DNA of 58,372 nt from Basidiobolus meristosporus CBS 931.73 (lineage: Eukaryota > Fungi > Basidiobolomycota), in NCBI GenBank assembly GCA_002104905.1, contig MCFE01000557.1:1-58372 (forward strand), read 5' to 3'. The notes under the pieces were generated by a model, which worked only from the letters and a program-made list of their open reading frames with translations, was not told the DNA's origin and made no database searches. Position 1 is the first letter of the stretch, and the number at the start of each line of letters is the position of its first letter. Below, piece by piece: positions 1,786 to 10,410 of the stretch. The position numbers and the translations under genes are program-made.

Positions 1786-3180
1786 ATGGTTGTTGTAAAG
1801 AAGATTTGCTGTATTGGTGCTGGCTACGTTGGTGGTCCCACATGTGCAGTCATTGCCCTGAAGTGCCCCGAAATCCAAGTCACCATTGTTGACGTCAATC
1901 CCAGCCGTATCGACGCCTGGAACTCCGACAAGCTCCCAATCTACGAGCCAGGCCTTGACGAGGTCGTCCAGGCCGCCCGCGGCAGAAACCTCTTCTTCTC
2001 CACCGAGGTGGACAAGGCCATCCAAGAGGCCGATCTTATCTTCGTGTCGGTGAACACTCCCACCAAGAAGTCTGGTATGGGTGCCGGGTTTGCCGCCGAC
2101 CTGGCCTACATCGAAACTGCCACCAGACGTATCGCTACCGTCGCCAACAGCTCGAAAATCGTTGTCGAGAAGTCCACGGTCCCTTGTCGCACTGCACAGA
2201 GCATGCGCACCATCCTGGAAGCCAACTCTCGGGACGGAATTAGATTCGACATCCTCTCCAACCCCGAATTCCTTGCTGAAGGCACAGCAATCGACGATCT
2301 CTTCAACCCTGACCGTGTCTTGATTGGTTCCCTTCAGACACCCGAGGGCCGGGAGGCTCAGCAAGCATTGGTCGATGTCTATACTCACTGGGTTCCCACC
2401 GACAGAGTGATCACCACCAACCTCTGGTCCTCCGAGCTGACCAAATTAGCCGCCAACGCCCTTCTAGCCCAGCGTATTTCAAGCATCAATGCGCTCAGCG
2501 CAGTATGCGAGGCGACTGGCGCGGACGTCGACGAGGTGGCGAGAGCTTGCGGTAAGGACTCGCGTATCGGACCCAAGTTCCTGAAGGCCAGTGTTGGGTT
2601 TGGCGGTAGCTGCTTCCAAAAGGACATCCTCAACCTGGTCTACCTGTGCCAGCAATTCCATCTGGACGAGGTTGCCGACTACTGGCACCAGGTTGTTGTG
2701 ATGAATGAATATCAAAAGAAGCGATTCGCCACCCGAGTGATCAAGTCCCTCTTCAACACCATCACCAACAAGAAGATTGCCATCCTGGGCTTCGCATTCA
2801 AGAAGGACACCGGAGATACCCGTGAGTCCGCGGCCATCACATTGATCAAGGATTTCATCCAAGAGAATGCCAATATCAGCATCTACGATCCCAAGGTTGA
2901 GCACTCACAGATCTGGATGGATTTAACCGAGCCTGGGGTTCATTCCAACGAAGACCAGGTGAAGAAGCAAGTCACAATCTGCCCTAGCGCCTACGAGGCA
3001 GCCCAGGATTGCGATGCTGTGGTCGTCTGCACCGAATGGGATGAGTTCAAGGTGCTTGATTGGCAACAAATCTACAATGGAATGCACAAGCCAGCATTCG
3101 TGTTTGATGGGCGCTTGATGTTGGACGCCCCCAAATTGCGCGAGATCGGCTTTAAGGTTGAGGTCATTGGCAAGCCCTAA
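1786..3180 (+). CDS. UGD1: UDP-glucose 6-dehydrogenase, intronless
   Basis: [13 protein letters not shown] Rossmann motif, [27 protein letters not shown] catalytic Cys, [14 protein letters not shown]; first ATG at 1786. Confidence 0.97.
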
Positions 3181-3407: not shown

Positions 3408-3657
3408 GTGTCAGCGGCGGGTGAAAGAATTCAGGGTTAGGGAACTGAGATTGGAAGAAAAAAAAAGCAAAAAAAATTGAACCGTAAACCAGATGAGTAT
3501 ACTGGGCAGAAATTTTCCTGACGTGCGACCACACTCTCGGGATAACTCCTTCAGCTCCTTGTGTTCTCGATTTTTTTAAGGAATCCTCCAGTGTTTCTTC
3601 TCCAACACACCAACATATCTGTATTATTTTTAATCTGCTTCGGAATTTTCCTTAATC

Positions 3658-4764
3658 ATGGCTGTTACTACTGAAACCAAAGCCAGCTGGGCTGATGAAG
3701 TCGGTGAAGAATTAGATAACGAATTCAACGACGATGGAATTAAAACTGTGGTCGACATCCAAGTTCGCGAGGATGGAAAGAAAGTCAAAGTAAGATCTCT
3801 TCCAGGCCCTGCTTTCCTTTTATGCAGAGGCTTGCCAACCTTTGCACCCGGACAAATGCTCACCTGGATACCTAGGTTACCCGTAAAATTCAAAAGAAGC
3901 TCGTCACTGAAAGAGTCAACCACGTTGTAGCTGAGAGAAAGGTTTGTCGATATATGCCTATATCCCATATTTGTCACAGCTGTACTTACCAACACCACTA
4001 TAGAAATGGGCCAAATTCGGCCAAGAGAAGGGTAACAAGCCTGGCCCTGACATGAGCACCACTACTGTTGGTGAACAAATCTTCTTGAGACTGTCGTCCA
4101 ACAGCCAGGTATTTTCGACCATTGATTTCGCTCGACAAATCGACACTCACCTCTTTACTTTCCTCAGAATGTCGAGTCCGAGGACCCTGATAGCAAACTC
4201 AAAGAACAACTTAAGGGCAAGAAGATTCTCTGCAGAATTTGTAAGGGTGATCACTTCACCCTCAAGTGTCCTTACAAGGATACCCTCAAACCTCTCGACG
4301 AGCTCACCAGTGCTCTCAACGAGAGCAAGCCCGCCGCTGCCGAAGCAGCTGCCGCCGAGTCTGGCACCTCTGGAAGATATGTTCCTCCCGCCCTTCGTGC
4401 CAAGATGGCTGGTGGCTCTGGTGCTACCGGTAGTGACGATAGAGAAAGAAGAGGCAAGTGTGCTCACTATTTGGAGTATGAAAGAAATAGCAGCTAACCT
4501 GATTCTAACTCTGTAATAGATGATACACCAACATTGCGTGTTACCAACTTGTCTGAAGATACACATGAGAGTGATATCTATGACCTCTTCCGTCCCTTCG
4601 GTCATATCGCCCGTGTCTACCTTGCTAGAGATCGTGAAACCAACATCTGTAAGGGCTTTGCCTTCGTCAGTTTCGCTGATCGTGAAGATGCTGCTCGTGC
4701 CATTGAGGGAGTTGATGGCCATGGATTCGATAACCTTATCCTTCATGTCGAATGGGCTAAGTAA
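3658..4764 (+). CDS. TIF35: Translation initiation factor eIF3 subunit G (multi-exon)
   Basis: [10 protein letters not shown]-terminus, [15 protein letters not shown] zinc knuckle, C-terminal [50 protein letters not shown]. Confidence 0.95.
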
Positions 4765-5894
4765 GTTGAACCTGAATATTGTTCCACCTTCAATTTCACT
4801 AATGTATGTTCTCGATGATTGTCTAGGTCCTCCAAATAAATTCTGAAATCTCTACTAACATAGAAATACCGAAGTTCTTCAAATTTGCATTTGTATTTGG
4901 GCTGTATACCAACATTTGGCAATAAAAACATTGTAGAAATATTAAACTGTTGTGCACCGTCACTTAACATTACACCGTCAAATTAACGTTAGTGTGCTCA
5001 TGAACTATTGGAGCTATAGTCATTACACATGACAGTTTGAGCTAGAACACTTTTGGATTTGTTTGAAAATGGAACAGTAAAAATATGTTTAAAGTTTTTA
5101 TTAATTTGTTTTGTTCAATATGTACACATCCGGCTGAAAAACTTGGAAACCTGAAATAATATACGTGTTAGTGAATGTGTAGATATTGAGGTATTGAGGG
5201 ATTCATAAGGAACTTTCAGAATATAACATTCATCTCATTATATTTCGAAATGAGCTGGGTTTAATAGCAAAATAGTTTCATCACGTAAAGTGTGAGGGGG
5301 GCTGAGTTTGAATATTAAACTGTTCACTTACCAAGATAGCGGAGAAGAGTGATGTCAGATGAACAACTGATGCGCTATTTGTATTGTCAGCTGGATTGCT
5401 TCGACATGGGTGAAAAAATAATTCAAGGATGTGCAGGACAAGGGTCCTGATCATAAGCAAGGGGCCGTAGCTGGTTGAGAAAACAAAGTTCAGATTCTAG
5501 AAAATTCGATTGCTTCGTCTAATTCAATAAGAATATAATTGCTATATAGTTATTCAATTTATAAAGTTCAACAAGAACTCGCATATGGCGTAGCAGTAAT
5601 GAATCCATATGACATTCATTCGGTCAAGGTTCGAATCCTTGATGCGAGTTAAATTTCGAGCGATGACTATAACCTTCATGCACCACTCTCAGACCCTCGG
5701 GTCGGTGATGATAAAACGAACCTTAGAATCAACCTGTATGAGCTCGAAATCCACACATCCCCATCATTTTTATTTCCTAACCACCCTGGTTGTTTACATT
5801 TTGGGGGGGGGGAGGTAAACAGCCGGATCCAGCCAAATCGCCCGATGTTCACGGCGACCGACGGAGCCCCCTTGGTTGCCTCGTGCTCGCGGAG

Positions 5895-6410
5895 ATGAAA
5901 GTGAAGATACAAAGTATGTCCGGACTTTTGTCGACTTCCCCTTTTGTGGCGTACACTCACGCAGTTGTTTAGGGTAAAGTTCAGCCGTCTACCGGAGACG
6001 AGTAAGAGACCTCCCGGTTAACCCCCTTTTCCCCTTGCAGTTGGAAACCAGTCGCCTTCTGGCGCTGGGATGTTCACGAGGACGATGTGTGTGGCATTTG
6101 TCGAGTTGCGTTCGACGGCTGCTGCCCAAGTTGCAAAACCCCTGGGGACGACTGTCCCTTGAGTAGGTGCTTTCCAAGAACTGTTCACACTGGAGCCGCC
6201 TGCTGAACTCGGTCGTTTATTTCTAGTTTGGGGGAAATGTTCCCACTGCTTTCACATGCACTGCCTGCTGAAATGGCTCGAAACGGAGAGCTCCCAACAG
6301 CAATGTCCTATGGATAGAAGACCTTGGGGTAAGCCGGGAATTCCCGCCCACCTGACCCATCCCCACCCGTTCTAACTCCACCCGCTTGTCCCTTAGAAAC
6401 CGCCACCTAA
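5895..6410 (+). CDS. APC11: APC/C RING-H2 subunit 11 (absent from ORF track; probably 5 exons including a 1-nt exon)
   Basis: Spliced: MKVKIQSWKPVAFWRWDVHEDDVCGICRVAFDGCCPSCKTPGDDCPLIWGKCSHCFHMHCLLKWLETESSQQQCPMDRRPWETAT*; exons 5895-5913, 5973, then from 6041, 6227 and 6397. Confidence 0.93.
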
Positions 6411-6543
6411 GCCCCCCCCCCGCCCCCAGATTCCTGCTGAGCTCGACGTTGTACTCCTAGTGCTTGTAAAAATAAGGCCACATACAAATCGCCATCTGTA
6501 ATGGAAAAAAAGTATCCAGATACACCACACATCACATATCTCC

Positions 6544-6592
6544 TACCACTCACCCACTCACCACCACTCACCCACCACTCACCCACCACTCG
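6544..6592. repeat. Short (CCACTCACC)-type tandem repeat upstream of CARM1
   Basis: ccactcacccactcaccaccactcacccaccactcacccaccactc. Confidence 0.7.
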
Positions 6593-6782
6593 CTTCGATC
6601 TCCATATTGATGGCAAATAAAAAAATTCATCGACTCCCTGATGACCCACCACTCGGCTGAGCCAATGGGTGTCAGAGGTGATAAGATGCCTGGAATTCAA
6701 TCGTATCCATTTGGACAACATTGTCAGCGTTGGTTGAAAGTGACCTTTCCAAGGTTTATCTCTAATAGGCCGTGGAGCGAGC

Positions 6783-8369
6783 ATGTCAGAGCAAAACGAG
6801 AACCCACCCGTGGAGCAGCGCGATCCAGCATACTTCCAATACTATGGGATGCTGACCCACCAGGTAACCTTGCCCGTTCCCTCCTACCTGCATCGACTGG
6901 CCCGTTTCATCCTAACCGCGAGCTCTCCATGCACTTTCAACACAGCAAAATATGCTTCAGGACGTGGTGCGTACCAGCACTTACCGAAACGCCATCCTCA
7001 ACAACAGTGCTCTGTTCAAGGATAGATTGGTGTTGGACGTCGGGGCAGGTTCGTTGTTCTCTTCACCCTCCGGCTCGGACCCTAACTAACCCAGGCTCCC
7101 AACCCTCACCAAGGCTCCGGGATCCTCTCGTACTTTGCCGCCCAAGCCGGGGCCAAAGTTTACGCCGTGGAGGCGTCCGGGATGGCGGAGAAGATGCAGA
7201 AGATCGTGGACGAAGCCAACAAGGAGGACGGCACCGGAAAGAACGCCTGGATGAAAGACAGAATCCAAGTGATCCAAGGTAACCAGAGCTGCGAGTAGTT
7301 ACCACTCACTTCCCCCTTCCACTTGATTCACCCGGCCATTCGCTCATCCAACCTTTCCCTGAAGACAAGATCGAAAGCCCCGACTTGCCAGTGCCACAGG
7401 TCGACACCTTGATATCGGAGCCGATCGGGGTTTTGTTGGTGCACGAGAGAATGTTGGAGTCCTTTGTGTATGCCAGAGGTACCGAACCTATATATGTGGT
7501 GGTGACCTTCAGTGGACCAACCTGCTTACTGGCTCTTGAATCTAGACAAATATCTTAAGGCAGGCGGGGCGATCCTTCCCTCTCAAGGGTCCATCGAGCT
7601 GGCGCCGTTCACCGACTTCGCTCTGTGGAACGAGACGATGGGCAAAGTAAGATTCTGGCAGCACTCGAATTTCTACGGGGTCGACTTGAGGCCGCTTCAG
7701 GAGGATGCCAGGGATGAGATGTTCGGCATGCCCGTGGTTGGCCACTTCGACCCCAAGTCTCTGATGGCAATGCCCACCCCAGGCGGATTCAACGTCGACT
7801 TCTACACCATCACCCTGGCGCAACTGCGGGAGTTTACAATCCCCATCTACTGGCAGGTCAAGTACACCGGCATCATGCATGGTATCGCCGGCTGGTTCGA
7901 CCTGTCATTCATCCCTCCCGTTGGCACCCTCAACCCAGTCAACATAGACATGTCCACCGGGCCAGCGGCCGAGAGAACCCACTGGCAACAGGTGCGTTTC
8001 CTGTTCAAGGAGCCCCTCGCGGTTAACTCGAACCAGGTGGTCAAGGGCTGGATGAAGTGCGTGGTGAACGAGATGCGAAGCTACTACGTCAGTGCGCACG
8101 TCGCGCTGTGCGACGAGGGCTCCAACATCACCCCGGAGACCATCGAGTTAATCCCCAGCTCCCTCCGAAGATCCGGCAAGTGGAACCTCCACGAGCAAAC
8201 CTACAACTACAGCTACATGCCCGAGTACGCGGCCAGCCAGGACATCTTCCGACCGGAGAGTAACTTCCTCTACGAGCCAGAGAACGAGTTCGTCAAACTA
8301 GATGTGGACCAGATCCCGGAGGAGATCATGACCTTGGCTGAAGGCGTGGAGCTTCCCAACCTCAACTAA
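6783..8369 (+). CDS. CARM1: Type I protein arginine methyltransferase, CARM1/PRMT4-like (multi-exon)
   Basis: [53 protein letters not shown] double-E loop, [22 protein letters not shown]. Confidence 0.88.
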
Positions 8370-8536
8370 GGCGCATTCGTTTATTTAGAACTACCCAACT
8401 ACTCCCCAACTACTTATAAACTTCTGATTACCAACAAGTGTTGAATGAATTAATGATGGTGGAGGTGATGAAAGGGAATGAGACGCGGATGATATGAAAA
8501 TGTACAAAAGAAATAAATCGAGCGGTGGTTGGCTCT

Positions 8537-9949
8537 CTACTTGGTTCTTGTGACAACTTTATGCGCCAATTGGATCAGAGCCTCCCGGGCTTGGGAAGGG
8601 GGCAGCTGCTGAACTGCGTTGATTGCCTTTTGGCAATAGGACTCGGCCAGCTTGCGAGTCTGCACAATTCCATTACTACGCCATACTAGGTCGTACGCCT
8701 ACAAATATGTGTTAGAGTGCGACCTGAGGGGGCGGGGCTGCGAAGGAGCGTACCTGTTCAATATCCCCTTTGGTAGAGAACTTCCGCTTGATCAGCTGGC
8801 CAAGTTCGGGGAACTCTTCCCAGGCAAAAAGCACTGGTGCGGTGGCCAAGCCAAGCTTCAAGTCGGCTCCAACGGGCTTTCCAAATTCGTCAGCGCTTGT
8901 GGTGTAGTCCAGCATGTCATCGACCAACTAGCAGAATGTGTGCATTTAGATACATTACCCCCACATTCCATCGGTGCGCGCACTTACCTGAAATGCCAAG
9001 CCCAGGTCTTTCCCAAAAGAGTAGGCCAGTTCGGCAACGGGCTTGGTACTTCCACCAAGGATGGCGGCAGCTTTGCAACTGTTGGCAATCAAGCTTGCGG
9101 TCTTCAAGTACGTTTTTCCATATAGTGCTCGAAGGTGGACAACTCAGGTCGTTCGTGGTCGTTTTGTTTGGTGTTTTTGAGTTGCTTCAACTCACCATCC
9201 ACAAGATCCTCCATGACAGTGGCCAAAAGCTCAGTCACCTCGGGATTTCTCAGACGGGCTAGGGCGATGGATGAGCGAGCCAAGATAAAGTCGCCCGCTA
9301 GTACGGCTGACCTGTTGCCAAAGGTGGCATTGGTGGAGGGAGCGCCACGACGAGTTGGGGAGTCGTCAACGACATCGTCATGAACCAACGATGTTGTGTG
9401 TATCATCTCAACGATTTCAGATAAACGACGCTGGGTGGGCAAAATGGTGCAACCTTCGGCATCTACGGTGCAGTGATAGAAGTCAGCGTCGTCAGCTCTG
9501 ATCCAGGAAGCATTGTTGGAGCACAGCTTAGTATCCATCATTTCATAAGTGTTGTATGATTCGGAGGCGGGATTCTTCGGAGCCAAGCTGGTAGCTTGTG
9601 ATATTAATAATACCAGTAGCGGGCGAATATGCTTACCAGGCTGTTCAAAATAGTATTTACTAATGTCATAGAGTCTTTTATCCTTGGTGTTTAGCAGGCC
9701 GTTGATGTTCGGTGTGATTTCGGAAATATTCTTTCCAAGTAAACTCCTGTGATCGATTTTGACTGTGGGTTCGTATTGCACTAATGGCTGTGCTTCTAGC
9801 ACGGCCTGAGTCCAGTTGCTTGCTTTACCGGTAAATTGGGCTGGTGTCGGTCTTGGGCGAGCAGAAGACATGGACACGCCACTGCGAACTCCAAGCGAAG
9901 TGCTGAAACGGCGCAGAGTGTTCCTGGTAATGCAAGTCGTGGTTGCCAT
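8537..9949 (-). CDS. COQ1: Trans-polyprenyl (hexa/decaprenyl) diphosphate synthase
   Basis: GKHIRPLL, EMIHTTSLVHDDVVDDSPTRRG (FARM), DDMLDYT..FGKPVGADLKLGLATAPVL (SARM); ends KVVTRTK*; start could be 9973. Confidence 0.92.
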
Positions 9950-10410
9950 CTTGAATGGGGAGAAATACACCATAGTTAAGTGGATAGCAAAGTAGAATGG
10001 ACCAGCGATAAGGAATGGGTAGTCTCTATATTAGCGAGTGTAGGAGAAGCACATAAAACTCTAGTCGAAGGAACTTCAATTATCACACTGGGACACGTTA
10101 ACTCGCACGAGTGGGTATGTAAATAGTAGAGCAGGAGCGAGTGCTATGCGAAATTCAATCACAACCAGAGAAATTTTTCTTTTGGTGATATGGATTCCTA
10201 TATAAGGTACAAAGACATGCCTTAAAGTTGTACCGAAAACGATTGGAGCAGTGTGCCGAAACGAAGAACGCCTACTGGTTCGTGATTATGCTAAGCTCAC
10301 TGGGGTATCGAGTGGGGAAGGGATCCAAACCAACTTAATTTAAGAGCATTCTTCACGGCTTGGCTGATTTCAGGATTATGTAAACATTCATGTGAAATGA
10401 ATGATGATGT

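Follow-up and report, generated by a model that had tools for sequence, protein, structure and literature searches.

One-base exons are an extreme test of splice-site recognition, and few have been documented: those of plant APC11, plant VPS55, and Fusarium CYP621A. In Arabidopsis thaliana, APC11 (At3g05870) has a constitutive exon of one nucleotide, which was proven by mutation (Guo and Liu 2015, PMC4674806). This exon is conserved in land plants and was missed by annotation, and its origin has been dated to early land plants (Yu et al. 2022, PMC8831610). VPS55 of plants resembles APC11: it too has a conserved 1-nt coding exon close to its N-terminus, which annotation overlooks, and some lineages have lost one of the flanking introns. 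It differs in that it is another gene and that its exon is alternatively spliced in several plants and is known from plants only (PMC8831610). Finally, the 1-nt exon of the P450 gene CYP621A in Fusarium was called the second known and the first in a fungus, in a report that does not mention fungal APC11 (Nelson and Syed 2026, PMC12940212).

Here we describe APC11 in Basidiobolus meristosporus CBS 931.73, an early-diverging fungus. The gene lies in a window of 58,372 nt (contig MCFE01000557.1, positions 1 to 58,372), and the second of its five exons is very probably a single base, G5973, between introns of 59 and 67 nt. An initial annotation of this sequence had proposed the exon and had pointed to the plant case, which the two papers on APC11 bear out. 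We found no report of a 1-nt exon in fungal APC11 in a full-text literature search with incomplete journal coverage.

The two APC11 genes, from Arabidopsis and Basidiobolus, are alike in gene family, in the length of exon 1 (19 nt), in a 1-nt exon at base 20 of the coding sequence (CDS), in a next exon that begins one base before the codon for Trp8, and in the position and phase of the next intron. In both organisms, public annotation fails at this site. The inserted letter is A in Arabidopsis (CAA, Gln) and G in Basidiobolus (AGT, Ser), and the flanking introns are 332 and 89 nt long in Arabidopsis instead of 59 and 67 nt. One host is a plant and the other is an early-diverging fungus. Also, the Arabidopsis case was proven by mutation, while the case for Basidiobolus is built on a cDNA contig and on comparison with other species. 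The exon in CYP621A is fungal as well, has the same AG-G-GT core and short flanking introns, and was likewise deduced from frame and phase and afterwards confirmed by RNA reads; unlike APC11, it is in an unrelated gene, in one genus only, with no counterpart outside of the fungi (PMC12940212). The present case puts the 1-nt exon of plant APC11 at the identical coding position in Basidiobolus, Endogone, and Calcarisporiella.

Structure and expression of APC11 in Basidiobolus meristosporus

The exons and introns of APC11 and the neighboring genes are listed in Table 1. On re-reading the sequence, we found that all of the exon and intron coordinates in the initial annotation were correct. Exon 1 runs from the ATG at 5895 to CAAA at 5913 and is followed by GTATGT (5914-5919). 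The next large exon opens with T TGG AAA at 6041, just after an acceptor (TTGCAG) that ends at 6040, and 127 bases separate it from exon 1. Joining 5913 straight to 6041 shifts the frame and leads to a TGA at the end of the exon that starts at 6041, which reproduces another of the annotation's claims. Within the interval, TTTAG runs up to 5972 and is followed by G at 5973 and by GTAAAG at 5974-5979. Splitting the interval around G5973 gives two introns with canonical ends (GT..AG twice), as had been claimed, and their sizes are close to those of the gene's other introns (64 and 68 nt). Each of the two introns has one match to a branch-like motif (yTnAy), with the A of CTCAC at 5959, 13 nt before the acceptor, and the A of TTAAC at 6021, 19 nt before the acceptor. 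With the G at CDS base 20, the encoded protein begins MKVKIQSW, and the conserved MKVKIxxW spacing is restored, just as the annotation had it.

Table 1. Features of APC11 and the neighboring genes in the window
Feature	Position	Strand	Details and evidence
UDP-glucose 6-dehydrogenase, intronless	1786-3177		
eIF3g	3620-4858		
APC11 5' UTR, minimum extent	5880-5894	+	X3 cDNA contig begins at 5880, right behind sequencing adapter
APC11 exon 1, 19 nt	5895-5913	+	codons 1-6 and base 1 of codon 7 (MKVKIQ + A); covered by cDNA
APC11 intron 1, 59 nt	5914-5972	+	GTATGT...TTTAG; branch-like CTCAC at 5956-5960; RNA depth zero inside
APC11 probable single-nucleotide exon, G	5973-5973	+	CDS base 20, codon 7 base 2 (AGT, Ser); cDNA joint leaves out 126 of the 127 bases; only this base gives canonical GT..AG for both introns; position equals that of the Arabidopsis 1-nt exon
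APC11 intron 2, 67 nt	5974-6040	+	GTAAAG...TTGCAG; branch-like TTAAC at 6018-6022; RNA depth zero inside
APC11 exon 3, 122 nt	6041-6162	+	codon 7 base 3 to CPL and base 1 of Ile codon; cDNA piece 6039-6162; translation
APC11 intron 3, 64 nt, phase 1	6163-6226	+	GT..AG; cDNA joint 6162 to 6227; position as in Arabidopsis and the other fungi compared
APC11 exon 4, 102 nt	6227-6328	+	second half of RING-H2 domain; cDNA piece; translation
APC11 intron 4, 68 nt	6329-6396	+	GT..AG; cDNA joint with one-base ambiguity
APC11 exon 5 and start of 3' UTR	6397-6427	+	last codons ETAT; stop TAA at 6408-6410; cDNA piece 6396-6427
Gene with last exon resembling protein arginine methyltransferase	~6700-8369		translation alone
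COQ1-type polyprenyl synthase	8400-9973	-	

The product that includes the G is an 85-residue APC11. It matches Pfam's zf-ANAPC11 (PF12861) with E = 1.5e-36 (124.7 bits, compared to a cut-off of 25), so it has the RING-H2 domain of the ANAPC11 type. There were 581 matches with E ≤ 1e-10, and the best match was APC11 from Bifiguratus adelaidae (79% identity over the full length); identity to APC11 from Arabidopsis is 65%. This is similarity at the level of orthologues, and the N-terminal MKVKIxxW strand is conserved as well. Among 18 homologues that we read, most have seven residues before Trp8, and serine is common at position 7, while none of the 18 has an extra residue between Ile5 and Trp8. 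From what is known of ligases of the RING-cullin type, this N-terminal strand pairs with APC2, and including G5973 would keep the strand in register.

The gene is expressed. A cDNA contig from run X3 (318 nt, word depth 396) has sequencing adapter at its start and consists of 5880-5912, 6039-6162, 6227-6327, and 6396-6427, which are contiguous in the record. X3, although tagged as possible DNA, is RNA, as is clear from the adapter, the spliced joints, and the zero depth in introns; its depth is zero in intergenic DNA as well. X3 is labelled with another organism code from the same study, and the contig matches the window in every exon, with one differing letter in the last piece (which covers the final codons and the beginning of the 3' UTR). 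The two downstream joints correspond to plain GT..AG introns. At the first joint, from 5912 to 6039, the contig skips 126 of the 127 bases, and three letters fit on either side. In other words, the mRNA carries one base beyond what the flanking exons supply. Across this joint it reads CAAAGTTGGAAA, which is the reading that the initial annotation had predicted, and the contig reads CAAAGTTGG there. The support from RNA is one assembled contig from one run, and assembled contigs drop rare isoforms; neither a lariat nor an intermediate with one of the two introns removed appeared in these data.

Two runs of the same organism yielded DNA contigs that agree with the window over 5803-6551, except for one missing C at 6412, in the 3' UTR. 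This C belongs to a poly-C run that is one base shorter in the DNA contigs from X1 and X2, and the RNA contig agrees with the window there. Also, one contig from X2 has an extra G in a poly-G run at 5802. In a DNA contig from a related organism (organism C, run X4), exon 1 and the start of exon 3 are free of indels and about 122 bases lie between them.

Several features of the surrounding DNA are worth recording. Synteny with B. ranarum comprises UDP-glucose 6-dehydrogenase and eIF3g only, as far as the contig from B. ranarum (L001) reaches. Between eIF3g and APC11, a 70-nt segment (5214-5283) is 88-89% identical to two places on that contig (9466-9538 and 9725-9797) that are about 260 nt apart, and the intergenic DNA around the segment does not align with L001. 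Scans of 4800-7000 for tRNAs and for Rfam families found no match, including at 5214-5283. Downstream of APC11, at 6522-6600, there is a short direct repeat with units like CCACTCACCCA. The DNA contigs are 7 bases shorter than the window there, and the depth rises several-fold, which suggests that the repeat is also present elsewhere in the genome.

Source of the extra base in the mRNA

The inserted letter is G. Since the donor at 5914 also begins with a G and the acceptor at 6040 also ends with one, the mRNA alone cannot show which G was used. The joint could be placed in four ways as a single intron (with ends AG..GC, GT..CA, TA..AG, or AT..GT), and all four are non-canonical. Only the reading with G5973 gives canonical ends, with GT..AG for both introns. 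In the genome, this base has an AG acceptor immediately before it and a GT donor immediately after it (TTTAG-G-GTAAAG, 5968-5979). We asked how often such a site would arise by chance, by shuffling the 127-nt stretch 20,000 times: an internal AG-N-GTR with both halves of at least 40 nt appeared in 3% (strict) to 7% (loose) of the shuffles. The same calculation gave chances of 0.036 for Endogone and 0.056 for Calcarisporiella, whose genes are described below. If the three fungal lineages are taken as independent draws, the joint chance is about 6e-5. We infer that G5973 is the source of the inserted base on four grounds: the signals are canonical, both halves are of normal intron size, a site of this kind seldom arises by chance, and other species have comparable genes.

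The strongest competitor is a single 126-nt intron with one splice site shifted by a base (GT..CA or TA..AG), which would yield the same mRNA and leave G5973 unused. The three ambiguous letters at the joint in X3 fit these placements equally well, and the inserted letter is G, which is not diagnostic, in all three of the fungi; a diagnostic letter (A) is found in Arabidopsis only. We nevertheless consider a shifted splice site to be very improbable. To our knowledge, introns with TA..AG or GT..CA ends lie outside the known spliceosomal types (GT-AG, GC-AG, and AT-AC), and the same holds for the other two placements of the joint. At 126 nt, it would be twice as long as the gene's other introns. 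It would also leave unexplained why three fungal lineages, whose introns look unrelated in sequence, each have AG-G-GTR and an upstream branch-like motif in the middle of the interval, when the chance of an internal site is 0.03-0.06 per lineage. And in Arabidopsis, mutations showed that the internal base is used (PMC4674806).

Two other explanations are far less plausible still. A weak donor at 5918 (GTCCGG), if joined to the acceptor that ends at 6040, would keep the frame with canonical GT..AG ends and would add one residue (MKVKIQSIW). The initial annotation had named this mRNA as the one to look for against its own proposal, and the GTAT addition that it would carry (5914-5917) is absent from the X3 contig, where the joint skips 126 bases and not 123. 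An extra residue between Ile5 and Trp8 would also be without precedent among the 18 homologues. This form failed as the main form of the mRNA; it may occur as a rare isoform, given that assembled contigs drop rare variants. Similarly, we give almost no weight to the idea that the frame problem reflects a one-base error in the assembly or a decaying pseudogene. There are differences in homopolymer length nearby, at 5802 and 6412, but the DNA contigs of the two runs agree with the window over exon 1 and both introns, exon 1 and the exon 3 start show no indels in the contig of the related organism, transcripts of the gene are spliced into an intact APC11 reading frame, and the AG-G-GTR architecture recurs in other genera. 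The DNA contigs and the intact spliced reading frame together exclude both an assembly error and pseudogene decay. We also tried two other ways of dividing the interval, and rejected both: an acceptor at 5962-5964 (CAG) gives a 9-nt exon with an in-frame TAG, and an exon that starts at 6009 has the wrong phase.

If G5973 is an exon, then splicing would involve two ordinary short introns, each with a GT donor, a branch-like motif, a pyrimidine tract, and an AG acceptor, with one G between them. Five bases (AG-G-GT) hold both the acceptor of the first intron and the donor of the second. One splicing complex cannot bind the two sites at the same time, so the introns are most likely removed in sequence, by intron definition. 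Sequential removal by intron definition was also proposed for APC11 in Arabidopsis. Removing intron 1 first would create AAAG-GTAAAG, and the context of the second donor would improve, from AGG-GTAAAG to AAG-GTAAAG. An intermediate with intron 1 out and intron 2 still in would read exon 1, then G, then GTAAAGTT, while the opposite order would give GTTGTTTAG-G-TTGGAAA. Either way, the G would become the middle base of codon 7, so that both the frame and the spacing before Trp8 are restored.

Zero-nucleotide recursive splice sites, or ratchet points, occur in long introns of Drosophila and vertebrates. They resemble the site in APC11 in that a donor comes almost immediately behind an acceptor, splicing has to proceed in two successive steps, and the first of these restores a donor. 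Ratchet points keep no base, whereas APC11 keeps one, which is coding and essential for the frame. By this measure APC11 does not have a zero-nucleotide site, as one base lies between the AG and the GT and is retained in the mRNA. Ratchet points also belong to long introns; given the very short ones of APC11, taking out a long intron step by step is not at issue.

APC11 genes and gene models of other organisms

The initial annotation had suspected that the exon might sit at the same codon as in plants. The codon position of the plant exon is not stated in either of the papers on plant APC11 (PMC4674806 and PMC8831610) or in their supplements. We derived it from the genomic locus in Arabidopsis and from a cDNA contig (L005 and L006, respectively). 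Exon 1 has 19 nt and ends with TTGC; it is followed by GTATCC and, after 332 bases in all, by CAG-A-GTAGGT, and then, after 89 bases, by AATAG and the next exon, A TGG CAT. These numbers reproduce A333 in the 422-nt interval of PMC4674806. The A is base 20 of the CDS and base 2 of codon 7, and the next exon starts with base 21. The two exons do sit at the same codon, at CDS base 20 after a 19-nt exon 1 in both Arabidopsis and Basidiobolus. Farther downstream, the two organisms also share an intron, identical in position and phase, after base 1 of the Ile codon that comes right behind CPL. Intron 4 of B. meristosporus was also found in the other early fungi that we compared, and Arabidopsis does not have it.

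We chose candidate fungi whose APC11 homologues had odd annotated N-termini and then read their genomic loci. A comparison with other early fungi had been suggested in the annotation. Two of these fungi have AG-G-GTR at CDS base 20. In Endogone sp. FLAS-F59071, the 19-nt exon 1 is followed by GTAAGT, 82 bases, TATTAG-G-GTGAGT, 85 bases, and CCAG, before C TGG. In Calcarisporiella thermophila, the 19-nt exon 1 is followed by GTAAGG, 80 bases, TTGTAG-G-GTAAAA, 70 bases, and TCTAG, before T TGG. Both genes encode MKVKIKSW, and in both the next exon starts from CDS base 21.

Overall, we compared two plants, early-diverging fungi, one aphelid, two beetle assemblies, and loci from metagenomes. Some of these have just the downstream intron, between bases 20 and 21, with a 20-nt exon 1: Bifiguratus adelaidae and two metagenome loci (L019 and L062). 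In two animal-like fragments from metagenomes (L063 and L059), we found an acceptor that matches the 20/21 intron. Others have just the upstream intron, between bases 19 and 20, with a 19-nt exon 1 or its equivalent: Gonapodya prolifera, Amoeboaphelidium protococcarum, a beetle (GCA_000390285.2), and metagenome loci L065 and L069/L071. (The 19-nt exon 1 itself is present in Gonapodya and a beetle.) Asparagus, the second beetle assembly, and many Dikarya-like metagenome loci have no intron at the codon 7 site, and APC11 of Asparagus has no introns at all. Most of the loci from the metagenome scan were intronless or Dikarya-like, and only eight had an intron at codon 7. Inside the 19/20 intron of A. 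protococcarum (L090, around 2550-2556), AATAG abuts GTATTC with zero bases between them; this acceptor-donor pair may be coincidental or may be left over from a state with two introns. Lastly, we looked for APC11 of B. ranarum by synteny. It was not on L001, which ends about 300 bases before the expected start of the gene, nor on L002 or L004, which are not syntenic.

Five early-diverging fungi have public APC11 models that are incorrect at codon 7: B. meristosporus, B. ranarum, Endogone, Jimgerdemannia, and Calcarisporiella (models P0342, P0341, P0340, P0005, and P0010 were compared at this site). For B. meristosporus (6039-6400 of the window), the model (ORX87169.1) is 5'-partial, starts with SWKPV by taking the AG of the acceptor into its Ser codon, and continues through the last intron. 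For B. ranarum, the model (KAK9763964.1) reads MKVKIKIAFW, and Trp8 is lost. From this protein model, it appears that the 19-nt exon 1 was joined to a cryptic CAG that is 10 nt inside the next exon, and that B. ranarum has the frame problem too. The models for Endogone and Calcarisporiella begin at spurious ATGs, either upstream or internal, and the model for Jimgerdemannia is aberrant, with a spurious N-terminus. APC11 is an essential cell-cycle gene, and it is truncated or mis-joined in the public models of at least five early-diverging fungi, which may lead comparative studies to count it as aberrant by mistake.

Ancestry of the exon

The shared position makes common ancestry likely, though short of proven. 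Our preferred explanation, which we hold with moderate confidence, is that fungi and plants both received a single 1-nt exon at base 20 from their common ancestor, near the root of living eukaryotes. Under common ancestry, the genes with just the 19/20 intron (in a chytrid, an aphelid, and a beetle), with just the 20/21 intron (in Bifiguratus and several eukaryotes), or with neither (in Dikarya and most monocots) would be secondary losses. Some lineages have one of the flanking introns and some have both, which is the pattern expected of differential loss from an ancestor with both introns. In particular, the 19/20 intron is common to an insect, a chytrid, an aphelid, zygomycete fungi, and plants. 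We also considered a transfer from plants, which is unlikely: the best matches of the protein are fungal (79% identity, versus 65% to Arabidopsis).

It is possible, if rather doubtful, that the exon is real in both groups and arose independently in plants and in fungi, for instance if a second intron was gained beside one ancient intron in each group. In favor of this, those lineages we compared that branch near the base of the fungi or outside of them (Gonapodya, Amoeboaphelidium, and the beetle) have the 19/20 intron only, and work on plants has put the exon's origin in early land plants (PMC8831610). Against this, two gains would need to have struck the identical phosphodiester bond, one base away from an existing intron. 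The 20/21 intron is also found by itself in Bifiguratus and in metagenome loci, two of which are animal-like, and the next downstream intron is likewise common to plants and fungi in both position and phase. Moreover, in these groups, introns are lost far more often than they are gained, which speaks against two independent gains.

If common ancestry is correct, then the 1-nt exon of plant APC11, which was thought to have originated in early land plants, is probably an ancient feature of eukaryotes. The lineages with one or both introns make it testable whether adjacent intron positions arise from intron sliding or from differential loss from an ancestor with two introns. And the smallest possible exon would also be among the oldest, which would mean that for well over a billion years the spliceosome has dealt faithfully with an acceptor and a donor that overlap.
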